Assembly: GCA_964035545.1 (NCBI GenBank)
Contig: OZ037766.1
Location: 22,680,767 to 22,744,766, forward strand
Reading direction: 5' to 3'
Length of the DNA: 64,000 bases
Source of the DNA: Bugula neritina
Taxonomy: Eukaryota > Animalia > Bryozoa
The translations under genes and the position numbers were made by a program. Shown here piece after piece: positions 12,735 to 59,441 of the stretch. The notes beneath the pieces were generated by a model. It was not told where the DNA came from. It ran no database searches and was given only the letters and a program-made list of their open reading frames with translations. Positions within the stretch are counted from its first letter, which is position 1, and each line of letters opens with the position of its first letter.

Positions 12735-13004
12735 CTGCCCCCTCCAGCAGAAAGCCCTCTTTCTGATAAAAATATAATTTACATAACAAAACGTATACTT
12801 CGTTGTGGAGAGAGAGAACAGTATAAAAGTATATACAAAAAAAAAAAAACAACCGATAAAATATACAGGTATATATAAAACGTGCACAATGTGTAATATG
12901 TAAGAGAAGGTCCTATTTACATGTAGAGTACGTGCCACCATAACGGTAGGGAATGCCACAGAGAGGTAGGGGAAGAGTAGTATGGAGTTGGAGATAGACT
13001 CATG

Positions 13005-14076: not shown

Positions 14077-14109
14077 GAATAGGAATATAAGACTTATACT
14101 GGCTTACCT

Positions 14110-16284: not shown

Positions 16285-17099
16285 GCCCCCTGGTATTGGG
16301 GTCGTCCTTTCTGTCCCTGGTCCTGACCAGCACTACTCCAGCCCTGCCCCACAGGCGTTGGGGGCACCCGCAGGGCCTGACCGGGGCTAGCACCGGCCAG
16401 AATGGTTACCAGTTGTCCCAGCATCTCTACCATACGGTCCACTTCGGCTTCCAGCGGGAGGGCTTTGGGACCTGTCGTAGCCCTGGCAGCGCTGACTCCA
16501 ACTACTGGTGGGTTCCGTTGTGCTCGATGCATTTGGGTAGCCAACAGGTAAGCTTCTCCAGCCTTCAGGGCATCCTCTATTCTGGTTATCCCTTTAGCTC
16601 GTAGTTGATGGTGTAGGCCCAGGTCGTTTAGTGACTGGACAAAGGCGTCATAGGTGTAACGCTCTTGGTGTTGTGCTGGCAGATCGCTATACGCAATCTG
16701 CACCAGCTTCTTCACCGTCGCGGCATGTTCTTGCAGCGAGGTCCGCGGGGTGCGGCACAATCTCTCTAGCTTGGTCCTAGCGTCTATTGCGGAGATGCCA
16801 AAACGGGCCCGCAGCGCAGCCAGTATCCCGTTTACGTCCGTTCCCACTCCGTACGGCTTGGCTTGTTCCGTCACCGCTCTCCGCAATTGGATAAGGGCCA
16901 CTCTATGCGGCCATTGAGCAATCTCCATTACCTCTCTAAATTCTTGTATAAACTGTTCGACATCCTCTGACCCAGTAAAGGTGGGAGCTTTCAAGCAATA
17001 TCTATAAGCTTCTTCTCCCTCACGATTCACAGGATTAACATCATTTCTACGCTCACCTTCTACTGGGGGTGGTTGCATTCTAGCATTTTCAGTCTCCAT
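16233..17099 (-). CDS. gag: Gag of element A (288 aa)
   Basis: Open ORF just after the PBS; clearly homologous to element B gag (PTFTGSEDVEQFIQEF versus PTFGGDGDVEQFIREF). Confidence 0.88.
   Translation of the reverse strand: METENARMQPPPVEGERRNDVNPVNREGEEAYRYCLKAPTFTGSEDVEQFIQEFREVMEIAQWPHRVALIQLRRAVTEQAKPYGVGTDVNGILAALRARFGISAIDARTKLERLCRTPRTSLQEHAATVKKLVQIAYSDLPAQHQERYTYDAFVQSLNDLGLHHQLRAKGITRIEDALKAGEAYLLATQMHRAQRNPPVVGVSAARATTGPKALPLEAEVDRMVEMLGQLVTILAGASPGQALRVPPTPVGQGWSSAGQDQGQKGRPQYQGALNCHGPRTLSLPAGRN
16240..16284 (-). promoter_or_regulatory. -1 ribosomal frameshift signal of element A (G TTA AAC plus 10-bp stem)
   Basis: Heptamer at 16284-16278 in the gag frame, 5-nt spacer, perfect stem CGGCCCGCGG/CCGCGGGCCG. 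The -1 frame reads EWQVPRR...PLANRF, homologous to the pol N-terminus of B. Confidence 0.8.
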
Positions 17100-17113
17100 C
17101 TTTGATGTACACT

Positions 17114-17131
17114 ATCCCACCGCTGCCACCA
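17114..17131 (-). promoter_or_regulatory. Primer-binding site of element A (tRNA-Leu)
   Basis: TGGTGGCAGCGGTGGGAT, complementary to the 3' end of metazoan tRNA-Leu(AAG/TAG) (...ATCCCACCGCTGCCACCA), 1 nt inside the 5' LTR. Confidence 0.9.
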
Positions 17132-17132
17132 C

Positions 17133-17437
17133 TGTTATGTTTTCCAGATTTAGGGTCGATGTGCCACCAAGAGAGTCTATTTATCACTAGAGAAACTTCA
17201 CCGAGTTAAGTCGAGTAGATATCGTTATATTTGAATACAAGAATACATAATAAAATCTAATATACAACAGTAATAATACGCACGTCTATTTAATTTACAG
17301 CACTATCCTCAACTGAGCTAGTAGCGCGAAGCTGCTACTATTACTCATAAACAGCCTAGCTAATTGGCTAATACATTGTTCCGGGTCAATACGCAACCCT
17401 GCGTATTGTGTTGCTGGTAGCTCCACGAGCCACCACA
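17133..17437 (-). repeat. 5' LTR of element A
   Basis: Direct repeat of 12430-12734, adjacent to the PBS. Confidence 0.95.
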
Positions 17438-33300: not shown

Positions 33301-34816
33301 ACTTTTGTTATTTTAAAGTGTGTCCATAATATCATTACCTCACAACTAGTGAATAAATAAATACTTTAAAAAAATGATTTTTATCTGTAAGCACTGAATA
33401 CTTTTATAGCTATGCCCTTGACCTCAGACGCCCAGGCCGGCCTATCAGATTCCGGTATAAACAACTCGGAAAGTGCATCCTCAAACCACACCCTCTCTGC
33501 TTTGGATGAGACTTTAGAACGACCCTTTAAGTTACCAGCTTTTTTGGAAATTCCTCCTCCTTCCAGTTCACTCGAAGATGCAGCAATTTCTCAGTCTTTA
33601 AAGCCTCCAGGTAAAAGTTGTACCCCAGGAAGGTATGAAAGCTTGTTTGACGTACTACAGCTACACACTTTATAGCCGCACACTACTTTATAATGTGAAC
33701 TATGTGTGTGTGCTTAGTATGGTGCATGGTATGGAATATTTGCAATACAATAGTTTCTTTAGTATACACCCATTGCCTGATGTGCACACTGTGATAATGG
33801 GGTATTTAAATTCCACTTTATTTTCTTAATCGCACAATACAGAAACCATGATATATATAATAATTATAGTATTCACTAAATGTTTACTTGAGACAACATA
33901 CGCACATTAATGTCTCCATGATGTATACACAGATGACTTCATCAGCACACTATGTGTACCAAGAAGGTTGCATACTGACTCTCAATTTGTGGTTCCAGTT
34001 GGAAGTGGAGAAGGTTCCGGAAGTTCAGGTGCAGACGAGTTTGAAGATAGTGTGGATTACGATGAGCTGACAGATTCCCTGCTTACTTCCACTTTTCTTA
34101 CCGCCACACCAGCTGTTCAAACTGAAGCATGTTTCCAAAGCAGTCAGCTCCTTGCTGTCCCACCAGACAATGGTATCTCAGACCAGTTGCAGTTATCTCC
34201 TCGTGTTCAATTGGATAACACTTCATTATCTCCCCCACCTCCTCAAGATGAAGTGGATAGTCATGATACAATACATGATAAAACTAAGAGTGATAGTCAA
34301 ACTGATCCCAAGACAAAAAGTGATGATAATTTAATGAAAACTAATGGGAGAATGCCACATGGCGCCATCCCCAATGAGGAGCAAGCAAGTGGGTTGGTTC
34401 CTGGTGCTCTTGAAGACCTTTGTCTCCCAGGGTACATTGTAGGGACTACTGTACCTCCTCTGGTAGACTGTGAACCTGACATTACATATGACCCCCTTAG
34501 TGAGTCAACCAAAGGGGAACTCAGGCTGTATCTTGACCAACTAGAAGAGACGGAATCAGAGCTCGGATCTTCAGTGTCGGGTCGTTCTGGTCGGCTCACT
34601 CCCATCTCTACACCAAGATCTCTCATTCATTTTTTCACAATGTTCTGTTTAATAACCTTTGGTGTTATTTTACTTCTCGCTTATATCCTGTTTGAGTCCA
34701 GCTGGCTTAGCAACCAGTTGGAGGGTTTAAAACACTCAGAATCCGTGTTGCTTGCAAAGGAAGTGTATTATACTCCAATTAGAACTAAGCTTCTTTCACT
34801 ACTTGGTTATGCTTAA
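21340..34816 (+). CDS. FRMD5: FERM domain protein, FRMD5/FRMD3-like, with C-terminal transmembrane segment (~13 exons)
   Basis: Exons: 21340-21441 (YTCKVRLF), 23663-23767 (GQWLLDYVCSELNLVEKYYFGLRY), 24651-24693 (KWLDLKKP), 25483-25561 (YFRVRYYP), 26028-26125 (YQIYMQLRRDVFHGRL), 28078-28198 (EFGDY), 30881-30968 (ETYGIDP), 31460-31550, 31985-32057, 32228-32397 (GLFSRTSSFRFS), 32789-32957 (GRC), ~33410-33632 and ~33932-34816 (hydrophobic FFTMFCLITFGVILLLAYILF). Confidence 0.88.
26762..27510. mobile_element. Non-autonomous DNA transposon (MITE, Harbinger-like TIR) in a FERM intron
   Basis: Perfect 14-bp TIR CACTGCGTTTCCAT (26762-26775) / ATGGAAACGCAGTG (27497-27510), GC-richer subterminal repeats and an AT-rich core. 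The TSD is not clean. Confidence 0.7.
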
Positions 34817-36783
34817 AGAATTCAATTCTTGGTATATAGCATGAGCAATATTCTATCTCATTCCTGTTTTACAAGATAACAAAGTTTATTTAATCAAAAT
34901 ACGTTTATGTCGTTACCCAGTGATTTGACGTCAAGGTTTTAGTCAGCATTCTTGGTGACTGATAAGCAATTTCTATTCCAATAGTCTTTTCAATGTTGAG
35001 CCGATAAGGTTTTTTATTGGCCCAGTTGTACTCAGTTATTTGATCATTAATCTAGTGAAGGTTCTTGTGTTCAAGCTACGACCTTTTTATATGTCCTGAA
35101 TTTGATTGTCCTAGTCCTTTGACGCTGGTGTTTCACTCCTGTTTCACTGTCTCACTATACTCTGCTTCAACTTTCGATGGCTGTTTTGTGTTTTAAGCAG
35201 GGTTCAATGTGAAATATTTGAATGTCTGCATTCTGCTGAGCAATATTTTCAGATGTCTTTTACTATTTGTATCAGTTTTCACCTTACATATATATAGCAT
35301 AGCATGCCTTTGTTCTGTCAAAATATAGTTTTTATATATATTTTATATTTATTCATGTTTTATGTGTTTTCTTGTCATCAGTTCATTTACTCTCTCACGA
35401 TCTAGATATGATATTTTTATTTATGACTTGTCATTTTATTAGAATTTCATCAATACATAGATGTACATGTAGTTTTACCTAAGCTTGTTGTTTTGAAATA
35501 TTTCCTATAAGTTATATAGTTAAATTATGTACATGTACAACTGCTATAAAACCTTATTCTTGATCTCTGAAATAATCTCAATAAGTGCTCAATTAAAACT
35601 TTTGCAAATTCTTATTAGGCAACTTGGAAAAAAATTATACTCAAGATCAGAATGATTTTCAAAACTTCCCAAACATTACTGTTGGAGTAACAGGTGGGCA
35701 TAGCAAAAACTAGGGAAAGGATTGCAAGAGCATGATAAATAAAAACATTATATTCCACATAGATGAATTATAATACGAAGAACATATATAGTTATATTAA
35801 TACCTATGTAATTATAGCATATTTTTATTACTATTATAACAATCTAGTATGACTGTACATTGCTGTTTATAGTTATATTTTATTTAACCCACTGCTAAAT
35901 TCATATCCGGCAGTGTTTCTAATCTTAGAGTTGTGCTCTTTTTAAGAGTTTTCGATTGATAATGGCCCCACTTGGTAACGGCCAAAATGTTTACTGGTTG
36001 CTATTATAGCGCCGCCTACGAATTCATCAACATGAACACCCACGTTTGTTGAGCAACCCTATGTCGATTTGAATACTGACGGTGAGTTGCACGGTGTACT
36101 GTGTTGCAAATAAGCACCACTGAGGTAGTTGCAAAACGCTCTGTAAATGTACTGTATAAAATCACATATACCGTAGCTAAAAACTGCAAGTTTAAGTTTA
36201 TATTAAAGATAACTCATTACGGTTATGACTGTAACTTAAAGTTACTAATGGTGATGCTAATACTAATACTAATAGTAATAGTAATGGTAATCAATATTGA
36301 ATTTAATATTTTATTTAATATTTGTTGAATAATTGTATTGAGATCTATAAACATTTGTTTAAAACAGCAACTATTTCAAGTCTAGTTATGTATATTGAAG
36401 TTGGCACACTCAATGATTATTTCGAAGTGCTTTCCGTTTAAAATGTCCATCTAAAACATTTGGTTTCATTCAAGTTCTAAGTCTTGAAGTAGACTTATAG
36501 TTGCACAGTATACTGAATTTAATTGTCATAATGATAGTCATACAAATTGCTTTTGTAACTATTATGATTATTGTGAATTAAGATTATGATTTGAATAAGA
36601 ATTTTAACCCAGTTACTGATTAGCGCTAGTACAAGTAACACTGTAAGTATACAGTTAATTATACTTAATGCCATTAAAACTAGTATTAACGAATGATTAC
36701 TAATGTGTTACTAATTTTGATTACTTTTATTCTAAAAGAATACGTTTAGAATTAATTTCAAAAGTTATAATAAAGAAAAATAT

Positions 36784-37132
36784 TGTGATAGATTATGCCT
36801 TGGTTTGTTCTTTTGTTCAATAATGTTAATTGGGGTCCGAAATTCGGAGTTCCGAGTTTCGGCTTGACCGAAGATCGGTTCCCCCGATCTTCGGGCCTGC
36901 CGAATTTCGGAGCTACCGAACTTCGGGCCACACACACAAAAGATTCTTTGTTTTATGTTCTTTTGTTCGCTGTATATAAAAGCAGGCGAGTTACGGTGTT
37001 AAGCCAGTCTACTACTGGAGCTCGCCTAGACAAGTTGACATTATTTTTATACTATAATAAACATTTGGAACTCTACTACTTCAACCTATCTTGTTCTGCA
37101 CTAAGTTACATTCAACCCACAAGTTTATCACA
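36784..37132 (+). repeat. 5' LTR of element B
   Basis: Direct repeat of 44227-44575; TATATAAAA at 36973-36981 and AATAAA at 37056-37061. Confidence 0.96.
36837..36926. promoter_or_regulatory. Array of six CCGA-N3-TCGG palindromes in U3 of LTR B (also at 44280-44369)
   Basis: Copies start at 36837, 36852, 36868, 36884, 36900 and 36916. The array itself is directly visible; a regulatory role is inferred from its position upstream of the TATA box. Confidence 0.75.
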
Positions 37133-37133
37133 T

Positions 37134-37151
37134 TGGTGGCAGCGGTGGGAT
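37134..37151 (+). promoter_or_regulatory. Primer-binding site of element B (tRNA-Leu)
   Basis: TGGTGGCAGCGGTGGGAT, identical to the PBS of element A. Confidence 0.92.
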
Positions 37152-37178
37152 TCTGAATACTAGTGTAAGAAGAACAAG

Positions 37179-38084
37179 ATGGCTCCAGGGGATGAGGAGG
37201 CAACCCCTGGAGCAGCCGCGACACCAACCCTCACTGTGGAGGCTTTGGTGACAGCCCTCCGAAAGTTGCAGGGGACAGGGCAGGCGCCACCTGGTGACAG
37301 GTACCGCCTCAGTCCCCCAACTTTTGGAGGTGATGGGGATGTGGAGCAATTCATCCGGGAGTTCCAGGACGTGGCCACCATCGCTGAATGGCCAGTGCCG
37401 GTGCGCGTCCTCCAACTCCGGGCCTGTTTGACAGGCCGGGCCAAGAGTTTCGCTCTGGGGCCCGATGAAGCACACATCTTACGTGCCCTAAGGGCCAGGT
37501 TTGGCATGACGTCAGAGGAGGCGTCTGACCGCCTACAGGCCCTGAGAAGGGACAGGAGGACATCATTGGAGGACCACGCCAACGTGGTGGAACGCTTGGC
37601 CCAGGCTGCTTTCAGCCAGGCTACCGGAACGGAAAGACAGCGCCTGGTGTACAACGCGTTTTTCCGGAGTATAAATCATCCTGACCTCCAACGCTATTGG
37701 ATGGCTGGCAAGGTGGGCAGCCTGGACGAAGCTCTGGAAACGGGTAAAGCCTATTTCCAGGTAGAAGAGCTTCAAGGACCAAGATTCGCCGCCCGCCAGG
37801 TGGTCGATGAGGAGACCGCCCTGCCTGCTAAACCCCAAGTAGCGGCCGCAGCAACTAAATCACTCGAGCAGACGCAGCTCACCATGTTAATGGACATGAT
37901 GAAAGGCCTGCAGGCTACAGTGACGAAGTTGCAGAGCGAACAGGCGGATAGGCGGGCTCCCCGTTCACGGGACAACCCTGTCCGCCCATCTCTACTAACC
38001 TGTTGGGGGTGCGGGGTGCAAGGGCATGTGAGGAGGCACTGCCCTAGAGGCCAAGGGCCTTTAAACACCCAAGGCTCACGGTAA
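37179..38084 (+). CDS. gag: Gag of element B (301 aa) with CCHC zinc knuckle
   Basis: CWGCGVQGHVRRHC (CX2CX4HX4C) near the C-terminus. Confidence 0.93.
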   Translation: MAPGDEEATPGAAATPTLTVEALVTALRKLQGTGQAPPGDRYRLSPPTFGGDGDVEQFIREFQDVATIAEWPVPVRVLQLRACLTGRAKSFALGPDEAHILRALRARFGMTSEEASDRLQALRRDRRTSLEDHANVVERLAQAAFSQATGTERQRLVYNAFFRSINHPDLQRYWMAGKVGSLDEALETGKAYFQVEELQGPRFAARQVVDEETALPAKPQVAAAATKSLEQTQLTMLMDMMKGLQATVTKLQSEQADRRAPRSRDNPVRPSLLTCWGCGVQGHVRRHCPRGQGPLNTQGSR

Positions 38085-38104
38085 CTTCCGCCAACCGTGG
38101 GCCT
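38060..38104 (+). promoter_or_regulatory. -1 ribosomal frameshift signal of element B (T TTA AAC plus 11-bp stem)
   Basis: Heptamer at 38060-38066 in the gag frame, 5-nt spacer, stem 38072-38082/38094-38104 with one G-U pair. The -1 frame is open into pol. Confidence 0.87.
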
Positions 38105-41100
38105 CACGCCAATCCCATCCGGGATAGGACTCGAAGAGGAGAAGAAGAGACCTCCACAGGGTCTGCCGATACCGAGTGGCAGAGGCCACGGAGACCTCGG
38201 AGACCGCAAGGTCTACCCGATCCTCCGGCCGTGTCACTCGAGACCCGGATGCAGCTAGAAGAAGCAGGATGGCAGGCACCTCGGAGATCTCGGAGACCGC
38301 AAGGTCTACCCGATCCTCCGGCCTGGCCACTCCAGAACCGGTTCGCGGGGTTGCCCGAGGAGGTTGTGGAGGAGGATTCAGCTTACTCGCAAGAGTACCC
38401 CAAGCTACCCTCCCGACCTCAGAAAACCCCCGTTGTCTCTAAGACAAAGAGGAGGCCCGCTGTGCGGACCCAAGTTGTGTCTCCCCCAGAGACTGACCGC
38501 TCCAGGAGCGCCCAGCCGTATGGAAGCAGCTACTTTCTGCCCGGAAAGATTTCGGGTAAAGCTGCCACATTCCTACTGGATACTGGGTGCACTACCAACC
38601 TGCTGAGTAGGCGTCTCTTTGACACTCTTGGTGCACGAGAGCGGGCGAGCCTCGAGCCGTATGAAGGTGCGCATGGTACGTTGGCGGACGGATCATGCAT
38701 TCCTTTCTACGGCGTCATTTCACTACCTGGACGCGTCCGTGATCAAGCAATTCACGAGACGTTCATAGTCAGCCAGCTGAAGGAGGACGCCATCCTGGGA
38801 ATGCCGTTTCTGGAGAAACACCAGTGTCACATGGATTTCCAGAAGTCAGTGGTGGTGATGGCTGGGAAGGAGCTTGTCTGCGTCGACAAGTTTGGAAGGC
38901 CCTTGGTGGGCGGAGTCCAGGTAGTGCGGGACTGCACGGTTCCGGGAAGATCCCAGGCGACTCTTCGCTGCAGAGTCAACTGCAAGGGGATCGCCGGCCT
39001 GGGGGTGGTTGAGGGAACGCACGGAGCGATCCGACTAGCAAACAGCCTGAATCGGCTAGATTGTCGGCAGGAGCTCCTCGTGCAGTGCATCAACCCCTTC
39101 ACGGAACCTGTCCGATTATCGGCTGGAGCGCTGGTGGGGAAGTACCACTCCATCCAGGAAGCGGATGTGGGTCCGGCACTGGAGACAGTGGCCGACACCC
39201 AGGGGAACCCCCCTCACACCAGACGAGGAGCAGTCCCGGAGCATATGGCTGACCTGTATGATGGGGCGTGTGGAAACTGTACAAGTAGTACTGAACGCCA
39301 AGTACTGGCTCAACTACTTGCGGAGTACAGTGATGTCTTCAGTCGTGGAGATAGAGACATGGGGCTGACCAAGGTCATCTCCCACGAGATACCCCTGGCA
39401 GCCGGCACCACTCCCATCAGGCAGCCTACCCGGCGTCTAGGCCCGGAGAAGGAGAAGGAGGTGAGCCGACAGGTACAGGATCTTCTCGACCGGGATCTGA
39501 TTGAGCCTGCCCACGGTGCGTGGAGCTCTCCAGTAGTCCTGGTCAAGAAGAAAGATGGTAGCTGGAGGTTCTGTGTGGACTACCGCAGACTCAACAGCGT
39601 TACCATCCAAGACGCCTACCCTCTCCCACGGATAGATGAGTCTCTGGATGCCCTCGCGGGTAGCAAGTACTTCAGTACTTTGGATCTGCTTAGCGGGTAC
39701 TGGCAAGTGCCTCTCAGTCCTGATGCCCAGGACAAAGCAGCATTCATTACTCGCGACGGGCTCTGGAAGTGGAAAGTACTGCCATTTGGACTAACGTCCG
39801 CCCCGGCAACTTTCCAACGGCTCATGGAGCAGGTCCTCAGTGGATTACACTGGAAGACCCTCCTCATCTATCTGGACGACGTCATTGTCATCTCGCCAGA
39901 CTTTTCGACTCATGTCAGTCGTCTGCGGGAGGTCTTTGACCGCCTCCGGGCAGCTGGACTCAAGCTGAAGCCCTCCAAGTGTGCACTCTTGCAGCCGGAA
40001 GTCACGTACCTGGGCCATGTGGTGGGCCGTGATGGGGTCGCTACCGACCCAGAGAAGGTACAGGCTGTGAAGCAGTGGACTGTCCCCCGTGACCTCCCTG
40101 AGTTGCGCGCATTCTTGGGCCTAGTAGGGTACTACCGGCAGTACATACCTGGCTTCGCAGGAGTGGCTCAGCCGTTAAATCGGCTGACCGCAAAAGGGGT
40201 CCGGTGGCAGTGGACGCAGGAGGAGCAGCAGGCATTCGACCACCTCAAGCAACGGCTAATGGAGGCGCCAATTCTGGCGTATCCTGATCCAGCCAAGGAG
40301 TACATCCTGGACACCGACGCCAGTGACCACAGCGTGGGAGCTGTCCTGTCTCAAGTCCAGGGTGGAAGTGAGGTGGTCGTGGCTTACTACAGCAAGACTC
40401 TCGCGGCCGCCGAGAAGAACTACTGCACCACTAGGAAGGAACTCCTAGCAGTAGTCAAGGCGGTCAAGCACTTTCGGCCATATCTGTATGGGAGAACGTT
40501 CCGTTTGCGAACAGACCATGCATCACTGATATGGCTGTGTAAACGTGCGGAGCCCTCGAGCCAGGTAGCTCGTTGGCTAGAGATTCTTGCCGAGTTCTCT
40601 TACCGGATAGAACACCGTGCTGGCCGGAAGCACGGAAACGCCGACGGCATGAGCCGCCGGCCGGTAGAGGACTGTAAGCAATGCCTGCACATTGAAAAAC
40701 GGGACGGGGGACCCGCTCGCCTTGACGTGGAAACAGAGTTAGGGGAGGGCGCCGTCTATCGGTGGGAGCACGGCCATCTTCGGACCGAAACCCACTCAGA
40801 CGACGTCCAGGCGCTTCACGCCAACCCCACTCTGTACCAGAATGTCAAGGAGCTGTGCCGACTCCAGGAGACGCTACCCGGCCCGGTAGCGGACATTTTC
40901 CGGGCCAAGAAGGAGGGCCGACGACCTAGCGAGGAACAGCAGCGGCAGGGAGACGTTGAGTTCCAACTCCTCTGTCGTCGCTGGGATGCCCTCAAGGTCA
41001 GTCCTGATGGCCTCCTGATGATAACGTTAGCAGCAGACAACCGTCAGCAGGAGAGGGACCGCGTCGTCTGTCCACGCGCCCTCCGACGGGAACTGATCTG

Positions 41101-44017
41101 GGACACCCATAAGCAGGCTCATTCTGGAGTCAGTCGGGTCATCAGGTGTCTGCGGCTGCGTTGGTATTGGCCCGGAATGACTCGGGACGTACGACTGCGG
41201 GTACGGCAATGCGAGGTCTGCCAAGCTAGCAAGCATGGCCGCCCCACGGAAACCACTGGTCGACGCCGGCTGTACGCTGGTCGACCGTGGCAAGTAGTGG
41301 CGGTAGACCTTGTCGGGCCTATGCCGTTATCCGCCAGAGGGAACACCTGGATACTGGTGCTCACGGACCACTTTACCCGGTGGGCGGATGCTCTGGCTAT
41401 CCCAGACGCAACTGCCCCCACGGTGGCCCGGACCCTGGACCAACATGTGTTCTGTTACCTCGGTTTGCCCGAGCAGATACATACGGACCAGGGCGCCCAG
41501 TTCCAGTCCCAGCTCATGGGAGACCTCTGCCGGATATGGGGGGTGAACCAGAGTCGGACCACCCCATATCACCCACAAGGGAACGGAGTCGTCGAGCGGA
41601 ACAACAGGATGTTGGGTGACGCCCTCAGGAGCCTGCTCCTTGGTCGAGGTCAGGAAGAATGGGACGTGGTGCTGCCACAAATCATGCGGGCTTACCGCAG
41701 CACACCACACTCCACCACACAGGAGACCCCAAACTTCCTGATGCTAGGCCGGGAAACGCGGGTTCCGGAACACCTGACATACCACGTTCCCGCCCCCGAA
41801 TCGCCGGTACATGAGTACGTCGAAAGACTGACAGAGATCATGGGTAAAGCCCATGATGCACTGCGGGCCCAGCAGTGGCAGATCCGCACAGAGGACTCAG
41901 AAGAGCCCCCATTGTATCAGGTGGGAGACTGGGTCTGGATGGTGAGCTATCGTAGGCGACGCGGACAGTCGGCTAAACTTCAGCCCAAGTTCGTGGGTCC
42001 CTACTGCGTGGTGGAGGTGCTGGCCAACCACACATACCGTGTGGAGCGCTCTGGACAGGTCTCAGTCCAGAGCGAACAGCGCCTGAAACCATACCATGCC
42101 AGCCCAGACGCGGTGGGTCAGGCTCCACCCCTCCTGGAGCCCAACCGCCAGCCTAACCAGCGGGGGAGAGCCACCCGGCCCCGGGAGGTGGAAATTGTCA
42201 TCCGAAGGGAGGCAGAGCAGGAGCAGGCTGCCCTACGAGAACAGTTGGAACAACAACAGAGGCAGGAGCAGCAGCAGCAACACGCCCCAGAGCCACCACC
42301 CCTCTGGGGGGAGGACACCCCCACCCGTATTACGGGTGAAGGCGGGGACCCCCCTACGGTGGCAACTGAGGAGCAACTGGCACCACCAGCACCCACACCG
42401 CTGGAAAGGAGCCAGCGAGCGAGGAAACCACCCAGATATCTGGCAGACTATCACATAGGACACCTAGGGTTGCCCCCCCCAAGTGGGAATCCATCTGTCC
42501 AGGGCCATTACTCCTCCTTAGTTAGTAAATTCTTCCAACCTCCTGGAGAATCACTACAAAAAGGAACAGTTGCAAACCGAAATTCGGAGGGCACGCGATT
42601 GTCTGAGTTGTCCCTTCAAAACTCGATGGGAATTCCCCACGATCGCGTAGCAGGTAAAAATATTGAAACACGAGGCTCGGCCATTTGCACTACTACTAAC
42701 CCACTAGTAACACGCAATTTTAAAGCTGAAACTTGTAATCGAATTAATCACGAATTGGATATGGGTATTACTCTTCCCGGTAACAACACTACAAACACAG
42801 GTATTTCATTAGAGTCAGAGCCTCCCGTACCGGAGTCTGACTCAACTGTAATTAATTGGGCTAGTTTAGATTTGTTAGAATCTAATTTATTAACGGAGGA
42901 AGTCGATGTGAGTTTTGGAGAAGACTCTCTAAATGAGTTTTTATTAGACCAGGACATAGGGTCAGTCACTCTCCATGACTCACCTCGGCTCCCTACCACC
43001 CACAAAGTACCCTATAAGGCGATGCCGAATTTCGGCGACGGCGAGACCGGCCTTACTCGGCCTCTGCTGTCTATTGTAGACACTGCAATGGAGTGTGATG
43101 AGGTGGAGGTCAGTCGAGTCGACTCCCCCCCTCCACCAGCCCCCGTGACGGCTCCTTGCAGCCCGCGGGTCGCCACAGACCGGACTGAGGTGCTATCCAC
43201 CATGAATAGTGACCCTGTCGCCAACCCAGTTGAGCTACAATTAGCCGCCGGGGAGGAACAGGGAATACTATGCGGTGTGCCCTCCTCTACTCGAGCTGAA
43301 GACGGTGACACCCCCACCTTGGCTCTACCCCAGGCACTGGTCGCCCGCCAGTCCTGGGTCTCTCGCGACACTAATCAGAAGATTAGTGAAGCATGCGGGG
43401 CAGCGGGCAACCGCATCTGCCGGCAATGTCGGAGGAAATTCTCCTCCTCCCGGCGGTTGCGTGTTCACGCCCCACAACATTTCATCAACGTATTCTGCCC
43501 TTGCGGCGAATACTCCTACCAGCGGGATTATGTGCTGCGCCACCAGCGCATCTCGCGCTGCCACCCAGGTCACGTGTTCACCGTGGATCAGGCCACATTT
43601 CCGGAGTTCCGGGACCTCATCCTGCCGCACGTCGCGGACCCCCACAAGCGTGCCACCCTCGGCCAAGGGTTTCCGGCGTGCAGAGCAATTCAAGAAGAAG
43701 ACGGAGAACCCGCCGCCGCCCTCCAACCAGCAGCCACCCAGCCTCTTCGGGTCATGCTGACAAGGGTCGGGGATGGTGCCAGACCCGGTACATCGGACCT
43801 GGACCCCCGCTCCTCGGCGGCAAGCAGACACCACCCAGAGCACAGACAACACCCGGAGCGCAACACACTCCGCTCCCGACCGCAACTAGAAGAGGAGGTG
43901 CGCCACTTACGGCGCCGCGTGGCACGGTGTGAGGAAGATCTGACACAATTGCGACGACGACTGATCCGGCTGGAACGACGTCAGACCGACAACGACGATG
44001 GGACATGGAGGGAGTGA
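38060..44017 (+). CDS. pol: Pol polyprotein (PR-RT-RNase H-integrase) with ~520-aa C-terminal accessory extension
   Basis: Protease LLDTGC; RT YLDD; RNase H DTDAS/ELLAVV/TDH; integrase H-H-CxxC (HKQAH, CEVC), D-D-E (VDLVG, TDQG, VERNN) and GPY. After RSQRARKPPRYLADY the frame stays open through zinc fingers and a coiled coil. The ORF track starts at 38231, but the frame is open from the slippery site. Confidence 0.95.
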   Translation, partial: FKHPRLTVTSANRGPHANPIRDRTRRGEEETSTGSADTEWQRPRRPRRPQGLPDPPAVSLETRMQLEEAGWQAPRRSRRPQGLPDPPAWPLQNRFAGLPEEVVEEDSAYSQEYPKLPSRPQKTPVVSKTKRRPAVRTQVVSPPETDRSRSAQPYGSSYFLPGKISGKAATFLLDTGCTTNLLSRRLFDTLGARERASLEPYEGAHGTLADGSCIPFYGVISLPGRVRDQAIHETFIVSQLKEDAILGMPFLEKHQCHMDFQKSVVVMAGKELVCVDKFGRPLVGGVQVVRDCTVPGRSQATLRCRVNCKGIAGLGVVEGTHGAIRLANSLNRLDCRQELLVQCINPFTEPVRLSAGALVGKYHSIQEADVGPALETVADTQGNPPHTRRGAVPEHMADLYDGACGNCTSSTERQVLAQLLAEYSDVFSRGDRDMGLTKVISHEIPLAAGTTPIRQPTRRLGPEKEKEVSRQVQDLLDRDLIEPAHGAWSSPVVLVKKKDGSWRFCVDYRRLNSVTIQDAYPLPRIDESLDALAGSKYFSTLDLLSGYWQVPLSPDAQDKAAFITRDGLWKWKVLPFGLTSAPATFQRLMEQVLSGLHWKTLLIYLDDVIVISPDFSTHVSRLREVFDRLRAAGLKLKPSKCALLQPEVTYLGHVVGRDGVATDPEKVQAVKQWTVPRDLPELRAFLGLVGYYRQYIPGFAGVAQPLNRLTAKGVRWQWTQEEQQAFDHLKQRLMEAPILAYPDPAKEYILDTDASDHSVGAVLSQVQGGSEVVVAYYSKTLAAAEKNYCTTRKELLAVVKAVKHFRPYLYGRTFRLRTDHASLIWLCKRAEPSSQVARWLEILAEFSYRIEHRAGRKHGNADGMSRRPVEDCKQCLHIEKRDGGPARLDVETELGEGAVYRWEHGHLRTETHSDDVQALHANPTLYQNVKELCRLQETLPGPVADIFRAKKEGRRPSEEQQRQGDVEFQLLCRRWDALKVSPDGLLMITLAADNRQQERDRVVCPRALRRELIWDTHKQAHSGVSRVIRCLRLRWYWPGMTRDVRLRVRQCEVCQASKHGRPTETTGRRRLYAGRPWQVVAVDLVGPMPLSARGNTWILVLTDHFTRWADALAIPDATAPTVARTLDQHVFCYLGLPEQIHTDQGAQFQSQLMGDLCRIWGVNQSRTTPYHPQGNGVVERNNRMLGDALRSLLLGRGQEEWDVVLPQIMRAYRSTPHSTTQETPNFLMLGRETRVPEHLTYHVPAPESPVHEYVERLTEIMGKAHDALRAQQWQIRTEDSEEPPLYQVGDWVWMVSYRRRRGQSAKLQPKFVGPYCVVEVLANHTYRVERSGQVSVQSEQRLKPYHASPDAVGQAPPLLEPNRQPNQRGRATRPREVEIVIRREAEQEQAALREQLEQQQRQEQQQQHAPEPPPLWGEDTPTRITGEGGDPPTVATEEQLAPPAPTPLERSQRARKPPRYLADYHIGHLGLPPPSGNPSVQGHYSSLVSKFFQPPGESLQKGTVANRNSEGTRLSELSLQNSMGIPHDRVAGKNIETRGSAICTTTNPLVTRNFKAETCNRINHELDMGITLPGNNTTNTGISLESEPPVPESDSTVINWASLDLLESNLLTEEVDVSFGEDSLNEFLLDQDIGSVTLHDSPRLPTTHKVPYKAMPNFGDGETGLTRPLLSIVDTAMECDEVEVSRVDSPPPPAPVTAPCSPRVATDRTEVLSTMNSDPVANPVELQLAAGEEQGILCGVPSSTRAEDGDTPTLALPQALVARQSWVSRDTNQKISEACGAAGNRICRQCRRKFSSSRRLRVHAPQHFINVFCPCGEYSYQRDYVLRHQRISRCHPGHVFTVDQATFPEFRDLILPHVADPHKRATLGQGFPACRAIQEEDGEPAAALQPAATQPLRVMLTRVGDGARPGTSDLDPRSSAASRHHPEHRQHPERNTLRSRPQLEEEVRHLRRRVARCEEDLTQLRRRLIRLERRQTDNDDGTWRE

Positions 44018-44226
44018 GACCCGCCTCTCCCTGACTGGTGGCATGACAATTCTCTGTTATACATATTCGTTGTCCCTTATACTATGTACTTGGTGTTTTG
44101 TTTTGTTTTGTTTCTTTGTTCTCTCTCTTCTGTTTCTTTTTTTTGTTTTGTTTATTGTCTGTCTCATTGTTATTATGTTATTATTCGCCCTCGTATCGGA
44201 AAGCATGCTTTCCGATAGGGGGTGTG

Positions 44227-44575
44227 TGTGATAGATTATGCCTTGGTTTGTTCTTTTGTTCAATAATGTTAATTGGGGTCCGAAATTCGGAGTTCCGAGT
44301 TTCGGCTTGACCGAAGATCGGTTCCCCCGATCTTCGGGCCTGCCGAATTTCGGAGCTACCGAACTTCGGGCCACACACACAAAAGATTCTTTGTTTTATG
44401 TTCTTTTGTTCGCTGTATATAAAAGCAGGCGAGTTACGGTGTTAAGCCAGTCTACTACTGGAGCTCGCCTAGACAAGTTGACATTATTTTTATACTATAA
44501 TAAACATTTGGAACTCTATTACTTCAACCTATCTTGTTCTGCACTAAGTTACATTCAACCCACAAGTTTATCACA
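44227..44575 (+). repeat. 3' LTR of element B
   Basis: Direct repeat of 36784-37132; preceded by AGGGGGTGTG. Confidence 0.96.
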
Positions 44576-46095
44576 ATATCAATTTGTGCGATGTTATTCA
44601 CCAGACATCTAAGCAAGAAAGCAAAGAGCTTATCATCTCATCTTTTTTTACTTTGCCAAGTTTTTTAGCAGCGCCCATTTCCTACTCCTCTTTAGTAAAA
44701 TTAGATCCAAATATTTTCCATGATAAACTTGTGAAATGGGCTAAGAAAGGTTACAGTGCAGACTTCCTTAATGATGGTAAACCGTAAATGTTCTAAACTC
44801 TAAACTCTAGAGCTTTAATGCTAATTCAAGTATGCCTCAAAGCTCAGTTTTTAGGGCCTATTTTTTACTTTTTATAAATGGCAGGCTTTTTTGTGTGAAT
44901 GATTCCATCTGCGGATTATATTATGTCAATGACATCTTGTTTAGCATAAATGTCACAGTTAATGTCAGAAATTGCTTGACCACACACAATAAAGCTAAAC
45001 AGCACCAAATGAACGGCCTATAAAATAGCGCATGATCTTTAATCCAACTTAATGTGCACATATGAAAATAGGACAAACCATTTCAATTTTCACTCTATTT
45101 TATCAACAACCCTGCAATACTACTTGTCTTAAATAGAAATAGTTTTTAACAGTGGAGAAACTTAATAAACAGTGTCAATGTGCTAGGCTAATAAATAATC
45201 ACATGTAATGGCAAGTTCAACGACCACAATCTACAACAGCTTACAATGCAGTTGCTGTGTCTAGTCAGGGAATATAACATTATACAGCCAGTCCTGCTTT
45301 CATATATAACCAATAGTTAATAACTAAGCTGAAATTAGTTCAATGTTGAATGAAGCGTTGGTGTTATAGAAGTTTTACGCAGCATCACAATGTAGCTAGA
45401 TGTTGCATTTTTTAGAGCGCTGAGATTGCTTCTAACAATATTGATTTAATTAAGTGACTATGTGTTAGTTTTAATCATTATATTTTGCTTGAAATAGTAT
45501 GATTGCCCTACATGGTAAACTAGATCAACTTTAATTTTCTTTGTATATTTATACAAAAGGTCTTAGATCAGTAACATACTACGCTTGATGCAATATAAAA
45601 ACTATATATCTTTGTGTTAATAGTTACAGTACCTGACTAATGATAATATATTTGAGACTTTACTACTCACTTACTCATTTAGTTATTGCTGCACTAAAAA
45701 TTGTACTTGCTGCACTAATAATATCATATTTTGCATTGGTAACCTTTATCCAATAAACGTTCTTGTATAATTATAATATTGATAAGCGGTCTTATAATTT
45801 AATTAAATTTTTAATGATAATGTAATCTGTTATGTGTCCAAGGTGAATGATACTAAATTGACATTGAATCACTATGGCACTGCCAACATTTTATTGATTA
45901 ACTTGCGGTTTAGCTGTTAGACATACTAATAAATGGGTAGCGGTTTCAGATTTAACATTAATTATCATTTATTTTTATAAAATAGTATACAGACTTATAC
46001 TTTTAATGTATACATTGGTGGCTGTTGATAAAACCGAGACTTCAAGTCTTCAAATTGATTTTGTTACTGCTCTACTACCTTCACCTTGCTCATAA

Positions 46096-49586
<3,491 letters not shown>

Positions 49587-53800: not shown

Positions 53801-56800
53801 TAAATGCTAAACATACAATTAAGAATATTCGATTTTATTTTCGTAAATTTCAAAATTTTAAAGGCCTGCAGTCAGTCAATGCACATTTTAAGTTATAAAC
53901 TAAACAAATTATATTATTCAAAACGAAGCAAGGGTCTACACCCAGCTCTGAATAGAGCATTAAGTACTGTTCACCAATTACTAGACAACTGTTGGGTTGC
54001 CTTTATTTGCTGCTAATACCCCCCACATACGATCATGCAATTTCTAAAAAGAAATTCATCATTATGGTGCTAGAATGATAAAATGTTTGCACAGTGTATA
54101 GATTTAGTAAATTAGGTTGAAGCTTCAAGAAAACTAGTTGCCTTATATAGGTTCGAGATTCTCAGTGCTACCATTTCAGGAAAGTCAAAACATCACTAGC
54201 GAATATATTTTCCAATGTAACGTTCTTTGACTAAAAGAGAATGTAAGTTTTAGGTTGCATTTTAATTTTCGGAATTTTACCAAGATAAAAAGAGTGAAGT
54301 AAATTGTTTGCAGAACTAATGTAGCGCAATTTTTTTTTTTGTAAATGGCTAATCACCCCCAACTCTAAAATAGCACATATGACATAAACTACTATTTTGA
54401 TGAAAATACAAACAAACAAACAAGCACATAAAACCTTGATTTGATGAAACTTTGCTGTCCTTTAAATTATACTCGTATACTTGGTTTTTTTCTTTTGTGC
54501 TAGATTGAACCTGGAATAGCTTAAACCTATGCATTTTCTAAGATTCAGTATGCTGCCTTTCTCTGTGACAAAGACTGTCCCAATTTTATTGCAATATTGT
54601 CGAAAAATTCTAAAGCTAAAATAGGCTCATTTTCGAAAACGTTCCGGTCAATTATAATAAAATGCTCATATTTTATACTACAACTTGTTTGAAAATATTT
54701 TTTAAAAGCTGGGCTTGCCAAAACAGGCATTCACAGCCTACATTTGCCAGATTGTGACTACTTTCATCTTTTAAGTCAATTGTCAGTGGGTTTTAGAAAC
54801 TTGTGGCAGTACTGTAATAAAATGGTCACAGCATGTGTCATCCTTTTGGCGTAGCACAGATGAACCCTATTTTGTCAACTATTTTCGTAAACTCAAGTTA
54901 AATCTCATTACTGAAAACAAGAAACGGTGTGAAAGCAAGGAAAAATTTATTATTTCTATTTTTAAAGATCATTTTTTCTGGCAGTCTTTTTTAAAATGGT
55001 CATTTTATAAGTGTTTGTTTAAAGCATTTGCTTTTTAATATTCATTACCTATTTATTTGATATGTTTATTTTTATGACAGAATAATTATACTTGGTCAAG
55101 AGCGTTCTCAAAAGAAATTATCTTATCCATTTAATAGAATCAAACTCAAGGGCTAATTATAAATGAAAAGTAGTTATTTAGAAATTATAAACAATAATTA
55201 TATAAAGGTGTGTTGCTATAAAGGTGCGTTACCTTAGCCACCCTCAACCTGATCAATACGCTATTTGTTATTAGTGGAGAAGCCAAAAGCTTTAAGAGCA
55301 GCAGGCTCTGTTGACAACATCAGCTTCTACCTGTCTGGTCAATGGCCAAAAGATGGCTGTGCTAAGCATAAAGGTGCTCATGATGTCAATGTCGTTACCA
55401 GCAGTACCAACACTCCGATTGGCTCTACCGGTGTTACAAATACTCCTATTGGCTGTAGCTTTATTCAATCAAATTTACGATGCAGTCCGCTGACATCCTT
55501 TGATAATCAAGACATATTTATTAAAGATCAGGACACACAGGTGAGAAATGGTTCCAATGTATCAAGAGATGTGGCTAATTTGTTCAATGATCTTTAATAA
55601 TAGTTTTCTTTGTGCTCTCAAGGTTCTTTCCAGTATTTTATTATTTCAACCAAATTTTATAAAGAGCCAATAATTGGTTGCAATATAAGACGCAGTTATA
55701 AGTAGCAAATGGGTGTATTGCTGTATATGATGTTTTATTTACTGTTGTAAGTGATATATTGACTGTTTTGCATGCTGTATTTACTGTTGTATGTGCTGTA
55801 TTTACTGTTGTATGTGCTGTATTTACTGTTGTATGTGCTGTATTTACTGTTGTATATGCTTTATTTACTGTTGTATATGATATATTGACTGTTTTGCATG
55901 CTGTATTTACTGTTGTATGTGCTGTATTTACTGTTGTATGTGCTGTATTTACTGTTGTATGTGCTGTATTTACTGTTGTATATGCTTTCGTTGTGTTATA
56001 CTCACTGTAGTTATTTTCGTTCTGTTTAGACTTCCGAGGACTGGGAAGACGATCTAAAGAAACCCACGAGCACCTCTAGCAAGAGTTTTGTACCTTATAA
56101 AAGATCAAAGTCAGTTGGAACCAATGAAAACTGGCTTAAATCAAAAGATGTAGGCTATTACAATCATAAGTAATGAAAACAAGTGCTTCTAAACTTGGAT
56201 TGCGCTAATTTACCCAAATTCTGTGCACTGAATTGGTTTTGGCGATCTTAGTGGGATAACAGAAACCTGTATGCTAGTGTAATACTAGTATACCATTGTT
56301 TTGAGAGCAGCACAATGCATTGCAGGGTGTATGGGTGTTGACTGCTGATATAAATTACTCCAAAATACAGCATAGTTGATCATTACACACACATGTAGTA
56401 CATCTGCTGTTGATTATATTTGAGTATTATGTAAAGTAGCGATGCATTTCATTACCAGTTCACCAGGCATTCAATTCAGTATGCAGTATGTAGGTGTAGT
56501 TCGTACTCACTCAAGCCTATCTCCACTTCACTTACACATTACTACCACAATCTATATCACACTGTAGCCAAGTGGCTGGTATAGTCACAGTGGGCAAATT
56601 ATTTGCTCTATTTGTTATAACCTGTTATATCACCTCATCCATCACACTACTTTATCTCTTCCTACTCAGTATCTCGTAGATCTTCCCATCTACCGTAGAT
56701 CTTCCCATCTACCCGTAGTGTATTTTGTTGTGTTGTGTCACCATGGCAAAGTGTTGTGATGTTTATTGCAGATCAAAGCAAGACTCCAAAGGAAAGATAA

Positions 56801-59441
56801 TTCTGGAAGAAGCGGTCAGACAACAGCACAGCGATTCAGTCCTGTTCCCATACTTACTAACTCTCTGTCACCTCGTGCCAGTGCCTCTCAGCCAATCAAA
56901 ATACCCGTACCAATACATGAAAATGGCATGCTCCGTGGCACTCCGGGAAAGGCCAGGGCCAGTGTGGAAGGCCTTAATCCAGTATGTATTACTTGCGCAC
57001 TGACAGTGGTTATGTCTATTAGTTTCCTACTGATGGGCTCATTTACACTTGGGAGCAGCTGTGGAGAAATTGTGATGACCTAAGTTCTTTAAAATTTCTT
57101 TATAGATTTTGGTTTGGGGCGAGGGCTGAATTTTTTGCGAGAATATAACTTCTTTTGCTGCATTTCTAATCTAGAACACAGGCTTTTTTCAATTTCTTCG
57201 TTACTGTGCCTAGTAACTCAGTGTCAGTCATATTTACTGTTAGTCGTACCCACTGTTGGTGTGTAGCTACCATTGTACATCTTTGTAATATTTAGTTAGT
57301 AATTAACATCATTAGCATGACGATATCTTCATATAGGAATATATCAACTGATGAGATATGTAGGCATGTTAGATAATAGTTTTTGTGCCTAGCATATAGG
57401 CGCCTTGTAGATACTTTAGAGTGTAATGCATACATACCACATGCTATTAAATGTACTGTCTTTTTATGTGTTGATGATCTTCTTGTAGGAGATTGAGAAG
57501 TTGATCATATCAGCAACTTCAGTACTGAATAGAGAAGAAGAGAGTGGGACTTGTGGGCCAGTATGTTAAACTTCACTGCTAGCTTCTAGTTGTAGCTTGT
57601 TATCTGTACACATGTGTACTGGTGATTAATTAACAGTTTCTTTGTAATTGCTGATGCATTCTTCTTTCATACTATTATCATGGTCAACAGAGCAACACTG
57701 GCTGTTGGTTTCATTGTAAATACAAGGTGGCACCAGGAGTTGGTGGGTCAAGTGGAGCACAGGTGCTACAGCAGTGCTTTCTATTGCTAGTATGCTGTGT
57801 ATATTATCCTAGCTTTACTGCCAAGTTATATTCTGTATTATATAATGTCACTGCCACCTTATTTACAATGTGTATGGTGCTATCATTCTCTTCAACATGT
57901 TACTAGTACTAGTACTATTAGTACTACTAGCTACTGCTACTACTAGTGCTACTAGCTACTGCTACTACTACTACTAGTACTACTAGCTACTACTAGTACT
58001 ACTAGCTACTACTAGTGCTACTAGCTACTGCTACTACTACTACTACGACTGCTACTGCTGCTTTCTATACAAATATTCTTTATAACAACAACTGAAAAAC
58101 CACTTTTTTTGCGTTCTCCATGTTCTGCTATGACTACTGTTCTCTTTGCCCGTATAGATACACCTGTATGAACATCCTGACGGACATAGAGCGCCAGGTC
58201 CAGAGTCCCTGAACTTCATACACGCCAACACGCAGACCCCCAGCCAATCTGACTCATTTTTGGGCGGGGACTCGTTGGTTGAGTCAACTCTATGTGACCA
58301 TTACAGTGGGGGTTTGAGGACCATCAGTAGGGCCTCCACCGATACAGAGAGTGCTAGCAGCAGACCTCAGTCTATCAGCCCCTCCCCCTTCCTACTAGGT
58401 AAGTTGTAGCAGCTGTGGATGTGTGTTAGAAGCTAATCTGACTACTCAATATACAGCCAATGTTTTCATGTCATTGCTGGCACAGCTTATACTGTGTGGT
58501 GTGGCTTTTGTCTCGAATTCTTCTCTACTTGATAGCTTTCTCTATTGTTTATACATGGCAGTAATCATAGACTGGTATAAATAACCTGGTATCTACATGA
58601 CTTAACCAATGACCATACTGCTTTATACTATATACTAGTACTGTACTCTTATTGTATGTACTTTACCTGTACTACTCTATACTAGCACTACTCTATACTC
58701 TGTACTAGTACTACTCTACACTATCTACTCTACTACTCTGTACTATATACTAGTAATATTACTGTATGTACTCGTACTACTCTGTACTAGTACTAATCTG
58801 CTGCTGTATGCTTGTAGGACCACTGGATATTGATGAGCCAACTTCAGATACTGGTATGCATAAGTATAATATTCAGTCTTTGTTGTGTTTGCCACTGTCT
58901 ACTATTCAGTTGATGTGACTTGTCATTCTACTGACCCTGTTACCATGATTACATAATATTTTAGCCACTAGTCCTAGACCAAATAGTGCTGGCTTTGTCA
59001 GACTTCCACCAGATGGCGCTGAGAAGTTGAAGATTGTTACTGAGATGTGAGTATTACTGCTGTATTTTACAAAATAAATCATATCTATAATTTAAGGGTG
59101 TCTGCAAGGGCCATTAAATGTCTCAAGTCGCCACTGCACTTTGACTAATGTAGTCTCTATGGATGTTGCTATGTGTTTACTTTGCTAATCTACTGGCCTT
59201 CATTGGTGTTGTTTGCATCATTATTTACACACAAGTCGCATTCCTAGTGGTTGGTTTACACTTGCGTGTTTTTAGCTCCTCACTACCTCCAATGAAGGCT
59301 ATTATTACCCCCATCACTGCCATCAAACTGCAGCCCAGTGAAACCTCCGCATTTAGCAGTCTATCAAGTAAGAGGGCGTCACTCGATTTGCCGTCTGTCT
59401 GTCCAAGTGTTGCTGCTCGGTTTGTGGAGGAAGGCCATTGA
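50814..59441 (+). CDS. GLCCI1: GLCCI1 / FAM117 family protein, multi-exon
   Basis: Family motifs occur in order on separate GT-AG exons: SVDNISFYLSGQWPKD (~55310), KDQDTQ/T, IKARLQR (56772), SVEGLNP/EIEKL, PDGHRAP (~58176), FVRLPPDGAEKLKIVTE (~58994) and LQPSETSAF. Stop at 59439-59441. Confidence 0.8.
51449..51506. repeat. (TTACTC)n hexamer microsatellite
   Basis: About 9 perfect units. Confidence 0.92.
51747..52085. mobile_element. PIF/Harbinger-type MITE (339 bp)
   Basis: ~31-bp perfect TIR AAGCCTGGCCACACGATCGTGAGAATCACAC; TTA TSD at 51744-51746 and 52086-52088. Confidence 0.88.
53176..53669. mobile_element. Degenerate MITE with imperfect inverted ends
   Basis: Left end ATGGTTTCATCCCAGTTAAACGCTTCCCA versus right-end reverse complement ACGGTGTCATCCTAGATAGGCGCTTCCCA; AT-rich interior. 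Confidence 0.5.
55720..55987. repeat. 21-bp minisatellite (TGCTGTATTTACTGTTGTATG), ~12 units
   Basis: Directly visible; it accounts for the repetitive ORF 55759-56010. Confidence 0.93.
57900..58062. repeat. Degenerate (CTA)n/(CTAG) microsatellite; a similar tract lies at ~58620-58800
   Basis: Directly visible in introns of the GLCCI1-like gene. Confidence 0.85.

Follow-up and report, generated by a model that had tools for sequence, protein, structure and literature searches.

Why should a palindrome that is repeated in the long terminal repeats (LTRs) of a retrotransposon also be present, letter for letter, deep within its coding sequence? This question is raised by a 64,000-nucleotide stretch of the Bugula neritina genome (assembly GCA_964035545.1, contig OZ037766.1, positions 22,680,767 to 22,744,766 of the forward strand; hereafter the window, whose numbering is used throughout). 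The element concerned, at 36784-44575, is apparently an intact and young copy of a Ty3/gypsy LTR retrotransposon, because its LTRs are near-identical and its reading frames are open. A first-pass annotation of the sequence had proposed that two copies of the LTR palindrome within pol mark an autoregulated internal promoter, as in foamy viruses, in an invertebrate; the host, a bryozoan, is indeed one. The features that bear on the question are listed here, with GC3 denoting the GC content at third codon positions.

36837-36926, no strand: six dyad-symmetric sites CCGA-NNN-TCGG in the U3 region of the 5′ LTR, with starts 15-16 bp apart
36973-36979, plus strand: TATA box TATATAA, 46 nt 3′ of site 6
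39112-39122, no strand: loose internal site CCGATTATCGG, codons xxC CGA TTA TCG Gxx (R-L-S)
42551-42950, plus strand: AT-rich island within coding sequence, GC3 0.27-0.38
42577-42587, no strand: internal site 1, codons AAC CGA AAT TCG GAG (N-R-N-S-E)
43025-43035, no strand: internal site 2, codons CCG AAT TTC GGC (P-N-F-G), inside the conserved block PYKxMPNFGxS

The sites start at 36837-36916 in the 5′ LTR and at 44280-44359 in the 3′ LTR. Both internal copies were confirmed in coordinates and sequence: CCGAAATTCGG at 42577-42587 is an exact match to LTR site 1 (36837 and 44280), CCGAATTTCGG at 43025-43035 is an exact match to LTR site 5 (36900 and 44343), and internal site 2 is the reverse complement of internal site 1. 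The general pattern CCGANNNTCGG occurs 15 times in the window, six times in each LTR and at 39112, 42577 and 43025, and not once in the 56,206 bases of host DNA that make up the window outside the element. The first-pass annotation had not noticed the motif elsewhere outside the LTRs, which is borne out for the host DNA, but it missed the looser site at 39112. An alignment of nine sites shows CCGA and TCGG to be invariant and CCGAA-N-TTCGG to be preferred, with no conservation of the spacers. The two internal sites both fit this best consensus perfectly, and 13-mers are common to the internal and LTR sites.

We compared these counts with two null models, using a motif that had been defined in advance from the LTR and not from the coding region. 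In 5000 dinucleotide shuffles of the 7092-bp element interior (58% GC), 0.0022 strict sites (CCGAAWTTCGG) were expected compared to two observed, and no shuffle contained two; for loose sites, 0.144 were expected compared to three observed. As this null ignores coding and the sites sit in conserved peptides, we then used 20000 synonymous-codon permutations in which the Pol protein and its codon usage were held fixed. The expectation became 0.057 for strict sites (two observed, P(≥2) = 6e-4) and 0.29 for loose sites (three observed, P(≥3) = 0.002), which for strict sites is about 25-fold higher than under dinucleotide shuffling. The excess of strict sites thus outlasts the coding-aware null, though it is far less extreme there, and the comparison with chance that had been suggested as a check came out above expectation even with the protein fixed. 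The single loose site at 39112 is within chance expectation and unremarkable; the closest relative, P0001, has R-L-G at the matching residues.

The codons that spell the internal sites are rare in Pol, with CGA used for 16% of Arg, TCG for 12% of Ser and CCG for 19% of Pro. At internal site 1, the central residue is Asn (AAT) here and Ile in sister fragments of the element, and only ATT could take the place of AAT in this frame without breaking the strict palindrome. The rare codons and the Asn/Ile swap lean towards a constraint on the nucleic acid.

The arrangement of the sites in U3 suggests what such a constraint might be. Among the LTR sites, the central bases and the spacers vary while the half-sites CCGA and TCGG are constant in six of six. 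Half-sites that stay constant between divergent spacers point to selection on a dyad-symmetric site for a protein and away from a recent tandem duplication. The repeated motif, with its conserved cores and divergent spacers, lies upstream of the core promoter, which is the layout of a U3 enhancer. An initiator (Inr)-like CCAGTC about 30 nt past the TATA box and an AATAAA at 37056 can be read from the sequence, and transcription probably starts near the LTR TATA box. The six-site array may thus be the LTR enhancer, with candidate sites for a dimeric factor. As a further observation, the whole array (36830-36932) is one imperfect inverted repeat of 100 nt in which site 1 pairs with site 6, site 2 with site 5 and site 3 with site 4. 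As a single strand it is predicted to form one long hairpin (−39 kcal/mol as DNA, z = −8.7), because the array is built of palindromes; this hairpin could extrude as a cruciform or sit as a stable structure at the 3′ end of the RNA.

The SAND-domain factor DEAF1 reportedly recognizes TTCGG(G) half-sites that are repeated and unmethylated (PMC4274154). TTCGG is present in 9 of the 12 LTR half-sites, and the likeness extends to the essential CpG and to the requirement for multiple half-sites (PMC4274154). The geometry differs, however, as DEAF1 recognizes repeated half-sites with 6-11 nt between CpGs (PMC4274154), whereas here the half-sites are inverted, not direct, with CpGs spaced by 5 nt within a palindrome and by 6-7 nt between adjacent palindromes. 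A DEAF1-like SAND protein as the host reader of the array is therefore a lead only.

On this evidence we tentatively favour, with somewhat less than even confidence, the reading that the internal 11-mers are further candidate sites for the dimeric U3 factor and form an intragenic regulatory module overlaid on conserved peptide motifs. The U3 palindromes CCGA(A)N(T)TCGG would be bound by a dimeric, sequence-specific factor and would act as the LTR enhancer just 5′ of the TATA box, and the two perfect-consensus copies in the coding sequence of the Pol linker would be extra sites for that factor. The linker sequence would then be dual-coded, with short conserved peptides underlying the regulatory module. 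Either a host protein or the element's own zinc-finger and helix module, released from Pol, could be the factor, and the internal sites could serve the LTRs as an enhancer or could act as an internal promoter. Direct observation covers the sites and how far they exceed chance, together with the anatomy of the element, the protein setting and the transcription factor-like architecture of the Pol extension; binding, its effect on transcription and the identity of the factor are inferred.

Several observations weigh against this reading. The peptide at site 1, N-R-N-S-E, corresponds to D-R-I/F-S-E-G-T in sister fragments (motif DR[I/N]SEGT), while site 2 lies in the block PYKxMP[N/K]FG (PYKxMPNFGxSxxG), of which P-[N/K]-F-G is kept in 20 of 37 aligned fragments; at both sites, peptide conservation across sister fragments reaches beyond the 11 nt. 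Protein function may thus explain much of the sequence of both sites, raising the chance expectation about 25-fold. For 3 of 5 sister fragments at site 1, and for 17 of 37 at site 2, the residues present could not be encoded by the DNA motif. Neither the motif nor a comparable palindrome array was found in any of 80 related loci from metagenome assemblies (Pol identity ≤56%), and the surroundings of the internal sites lack a core-promoter element. On the other side, both sites fall in a predicted disordered linker (pLDDT about 40-50 in an AlphaFold2 (AF2) model), where protein constraint would leave room for nucleic-acid signals.

The linker belongs to a long extension of Pol. The first-pass annotation had placed the palindromes upstream of and inside an accessory region; we found no separate open reading frame (ORF) there. 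The pol frame is stop-free from the integrase (end near 42055) to 44015, and the region is a C-terminal Pol extension in frame with the integrase. The candidate start codons at 42626 and 42761 do exist, but both are in-frame internal Met codons of the 1928-codon pol ORF. The extension and its folded parts are as follows.

42191-44014, plus strand: C-terminal Pol extension, 608 aa (AF2 model)
43328-43675, plus strand: tandem C2H2-like zinc-finger domain, pLDDT ~95 (AF2)
43877-43996, plus strand: C-terminal 40-residue helix, pLDDT 91-95

In the AF2 model, a helix at residues 2-30 of the extension is followed by a disordered linker (~40-375), a folded Cys/His domain (380-495), a disordered stretch and a long helix (563-602). 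Within the linker, of about 335 residues, lie the AT-rich island, both DNA sites and a single short amphipathic helix of acidic character. The first finger has the canonical C2H2 spacing C-x2-C-x3-F-x5-L-x2-H-x3-H and is followed by a CxCG...H unit; C41, C44, H57 and H61 are invariant among 20 sequences. The extension matched no Pfam family at E≤0.1, and nothing matched it when full-length Pol was searched with a word index. An exhaustive HMMER search with the extension gave 223 representatives, all of them short metagenome or sequencing-run assembly fragments, the closest being 73% identical. For the finger module, a phmmer search of the PDB returned only C2H2 proteins (E 0.05-1) and the best Foldseek matches were mostly C2H2 DNA binders (E about 1), both below significance. 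The module, of about 100 residues, is kept at the Pol C-terminus in at least 22 more distant relatives. Carriers of the module (among them P0004-P0111) represent a whole clade of Ty3/gypsy elements that is abundant in marine and other metagenome assemblies.

The terminal helix is a candidate coiled-coil dimerization helix, and the predicted layout of the extension is that of a dimeric transcription factor. It is also what a targeting or nucleic-acid-binding appendage of the integrase might show. The proposal that an accessory protein regulates the element therefore keeps its transcription factor-like layout downstream of the sites (a disordered acidic linker, a C2H2-like domain and a 40-residue helix), but as a part of Pol. 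Chromoviruses are Ty3/gypsy elements with a chromodomain fused after the integrase, and the two cases are alike in carrying a non-catalytic, chromatin- or nucleic-acid-binding module on the integrase C-terminus throughout a Ty3/gypsy clade. They differ in that the module here is a tandem C2H2-like domain with a terminal helix, and that ~335 disordered residues lie between integrase and module. The chromodomain has been cited as a known accessory domain (PMC6338049). A finger module that follows the integrase and belongs to no Pfam family is a candidate for a hitherto undescribed kind of accessory domain in the Pol of Ty3/gypsy elements.

The AT-richer segment between the sites is real. GC content is 0.41-0.46 over ~42450-43050 compared to ~0.6 elsewhere in the element, and GC3 is 0.27-0.38 for codons starting at 42551-42910 compared to 0.6-0.75 in the flanks. 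The earlier statement that the palindromes flank this segment is loose, as internal site 1 lies within the island and internal site 2 about 75 nt past its right edge. The protein sequence of the island is conserved in sister fragments about as well as that of its flanks, and its amino-acid bias is common to them (FYMINK residues 0.21 and GARP residues 0.19, compared to 0.11-0.14 and 0.29-0.36 in the flanks). The GC3 drop shows an additional synonymous-level bias in this copy. Three accounts of the island were rejected. A host-derived or private insertion is ruled out, as sister fragments conserve both its protein sequence and its amino-acid bias. A miniature inverted-repeat transposable element (MITE)-like insertion bounded by the 11-bp inverted repeat is likewise ruled out, since there is no target duplication, the frame is open and the segment is conserved as protein. 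A simple in-frame intron of 294 nt at 42654-42947 (CAG|GTAAAA ... TTTTTATTAG|) is unsupported, the segment being translated and conserved in sisters.

How well do other explanations account for the internal sites? They could be a by-product of coding, if the linker motifs DR[I/N]SE and MP[N/K]FG have codons that happen to spell the LTR palindrome and serve no nucleic-acid function. The conserved peptide blocks, which outreach the 11-mers in many sister fragments, are what this account would lead one to expect, as is the lack of the motif in all 80 related loci. Given P-N-F-G, codon usage alone yields the DNA motif with a probability of ~0.04, and the third, loose site is both within chance and not conserved in P0001. 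Against this stand the probability of 6e-4 that two strict sites arise together when the protein is fixed, the rare codons at both sites, and an Ile-to-Asn change at site 1 that is non-conservative for the protein and neutral for the palindrome; the motif, moreover, was set beforehand from the LTR rather than chosen from the coding region. We regard a pure coding by-product as unlikely, though with a chance that has to be taken seriously. The loop envisaged by the first-pass annotation is improbable. Foamy viruses use an internal promoter and the transactivator Tas; the corresponding scheme here would have an internal promoter, a transcript from Met 42626, 42761 or 43022, and a zinc-finger and coiled-coil transactivator that binds the internal and LTR palindromes. 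The likeness lies in the idea that one regulatory protein acts both on the LTR and on another place towards the 3′ part, upstream of sequence for a DNA-binding protein, whereas the present element is Ty3/gypsy, not a spumaretrovirus, lacks env and a separate ORF for a transactivator, and has an internal start only as a hypothesis. The predicted product does resemble a transcription factor, with an acidic disordered region containing an amphipathic helix, a C2H2-like domain and a 40-residue helix that could dimerize on a dyad site, and the AT-rich island could favour promoter opening. In several sister fragments the called genes begin with Met codons that correspond to 42626, 42761 and 43022, which is suggestive, but such starts may reflect stops or frameshifts in decayed copies and short contigs, and P0241 and P0249 share contigs in different frames. 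The frame is continuous with the integrase, and the module could be released by Pol processing with no internal promoter; the zinc-finger module is also present in at least 22 relatives that have no palindrome, and of the three candidate Met codons two precede site 2. No TATAWAW lies between 37670 and the 3′ LTR, which is weak negative evidence, and there is no convincing pair of Inr and downstream promoter element (DPE) near the internal sites. What stands of the proposed autoregulated internal promoter is that the recurrence of the palindrome is not due to chance; what does not stand is a separate transactivator gene. An alternative is a spliced subgenomic RNA, which would join the donor-like GTAAGA just 5′ of the gag ATG, at about 37167, to the acceptor-like TTTTTATTAG at 42947.

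The internal 11-mers might instead act in the RNA, pairing with each other or with U3 sites 5 and 1, in cis or in trans, for domain closure, cyclization, dimerization or packaging. The U3 sites 5 and 1 are reverse complements of the internal 11-mers, and the genomic RNA carries them at its 3′ end, where the U3 array would form its long hairpin (z = −8.7). In both the minimum free energy (MFE) and centroid folds of 42560-43052, site 1 pairs with site 2 in a helix lengthened by five more base pairs, closing a domain of ~450 nt. Such pairing is built into any two strict sites whose central bases differ, however, and they differ with a 50% chance; the folding z-score of the region (−4.4) is ordinary among other windows of the element (−1.3 to −6.7). 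A signal of this kind seems quite improbable to us. It is highly unlikely that the island is a recombination footprint, that is, a mosaic segment whose source was host RNA or a sister lineage richer in AT, the palindromes marking template switches. The sharp GC3 drop would suit such an origin, and in the related locus L006 an LTR R-region piece of 17-20 nt is repeated three times in pol, which indicates that LTR-derived pieces can move inside elements. Yet the protein sequence and bias of the island are common to many sister fragments and hence ancestral rather than private, the sites lie off the island borders, and at those borders the frame is open with no duplication.

The reading of the internal 11-mers as extra sites for the U3 factor would have a bearing beyond this element. 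LTR retrotransposons are generally held to depend on host factors at the LTR, and it is complex retroviruses that typically encode transcriptional regulators of their own and use internal promoters. Exact copies of U3 sites placed before a transcription factor-like Pol extension in an invertebrate Ty3/gypsy element would offer a tractable test case for the origin of such circuits. The element would also illustrate how DNA signals can be overlaid on protein-coding sequence in a disordered linker. In a bolder version, a Ty3/gypsy clade would carry a dimeric zinc-finger module on Pol, and in this bryozoan lineage that module would recognize CCGAANTTCGG in the element's own U3 and coding region, acting as a transactivator or self-recognition protein that is made from an internal transcript or released from Pol. 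We consider this bolder version a long shot; if true, it would be an autoregulatory circuit of a kind so far known only from complex retroviruses.

Some parts of the preferred reading have counterparts elsewhere. The yeast element Ty1 has intragenic activating sites in the gag region and an internal Ty1i promoter, and is therefore an LTR retrotransposon with functional transcription factor sites within coding sequence and a second, internal transcript. The Ty1 sites, however, lie just 3′ of the 5′ LTR and are bound by known host factors, whereas the sites here are 5.5-6 kb downstream, are exact copies of U3 sites and are putative. Drosophila gypsy carries an array of Su(Hw) binding sites and human T-cell leukaemia virus type 1 (HTLV-1) has 21-bp Tax-responsive repeats, which are likewise regularly spaced arrays of a short motif in the regulatory region of a retroelement. 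They differ in motif, geometry and host from the dyad-symmetric 11-mers placed every 15-16 bp here, and we know of no exact copies of either array within pol.

The remaining anatomy of the element is given below, where the target-site duplication, the primer-binding site and the polypurine tract are assigned from sequence reading.

36780-36783 and 44576-44579, no strand: target-site duplication ATAT, left and right copies
36784-37132, plus strand: 5′ LTR, 349 bp, TGTGAT...ATCACA, identical to the 3′ LTR at 348 of 349 positions (mismatch at 37076)
37134-37151, plus strand: primer-binding-site-like 18-mer, TGG-initiated, one base past the 5′ LTR
37179-38084, plus strand: gag ORF, 301 aa, with a C-x2-C-x4-H-x4-C (CCHC) knuckle near its end
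38060-38066, plus strand: slippery heptamer T TTA AAC, read in the gag frame, with the gag stop 16 nt further on
38048-44017, plus strand: pol open frame, containing the 1928-codon ORF at 38231-44017
38540-38815, plus strand: protease domain of Pol (domain limits approximate; order from Pfam)
39542-40021, plus strand: reverse transcriptase (RT) domain
40211-40597, plus strand: RNase H domain
41072-42055, plus strand: integrase (IN) domain
44214-44226, plus strand: polypurine-tract-like GATAGGGGGTGTG, G-rich, directly 5′ of the 3′ LTR
44227-44575, plus strand: 3′ LTR, with a six-site array of identical layout at 44280-44369

The order protease, RT, RNase H and integrase in Pol, together with the CCHC knuckle of gag, is that of Ty3/gypsy (Metaviridae-type) elements, and Pol has thousands of relatives of the gypsy type. 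The pol frame, −1 relative to gag, is open from 38048 at a textbook slippery site, suggesting that pol is expressed by a −1 frameshift. The element has a GC content of ~58% and a CpG observed/expected ratio of 0.74, compared to ~30-35% and 0.53 in the host flanks; its metagenome relatives have a GC content of 45-52%. The closest full-length Pol, that of P0001, is 74% identical over RT-IN and diverges after the integrase. Scans of viral contigs with Pol, with the two-site pattern and with a degenerate PYKxMPNFG pattern returned nothing related. Two further candidates, L001 and L082 (the latter from a genome-contig scan, in a Cytophagaceae metagenome-assembled genome), were discarded as chance matches. 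In L006 (positions 3857-4018 and 7117-7140), a 17-20-nt stretch with an ATGC-N6-GCAT palindrome lies just downstream of the LTR TATA box, and a 54-bp tandem repeat inside pol, located where the reading frame shifts, contains three further occurrences of this stretch. L006 is an independent case of LTR sequence recurring in a coding region.

The window contains a second, shorter LTR retrotransposon at 12430-17432, apparently truncated or decayed, in which identical direct repeats (12430-12729 and 17133-17432, 4703 bp apart) enclose minus-strand protease and RT ORFs; CCGANNNTCGG is absent from this element. Upstream of the Ty3/gypsy element, a plus-strand ORF of 282 aa at 33968-34816 has no Pfam match. 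Downstream, a host ORF at 46135-47295 encodes four zf-C2HC_2 domains (ZNF474-like) and is 96% identical to a Bugula neritina protein, a match by which the host would be a bryozoan near the sequenced B. neritina though perhaps distinct from it. Host tandem repeats occur at 1374-1594, 49273-49355, 55736-55986, 57901-58056 and 58616-58789; their types comprise an AGT-rich array of 27-30-bp units, an (AT)41 run, a 21-bp unit repeated 12 times and TAC-rich arrays of 19-23-bp units.

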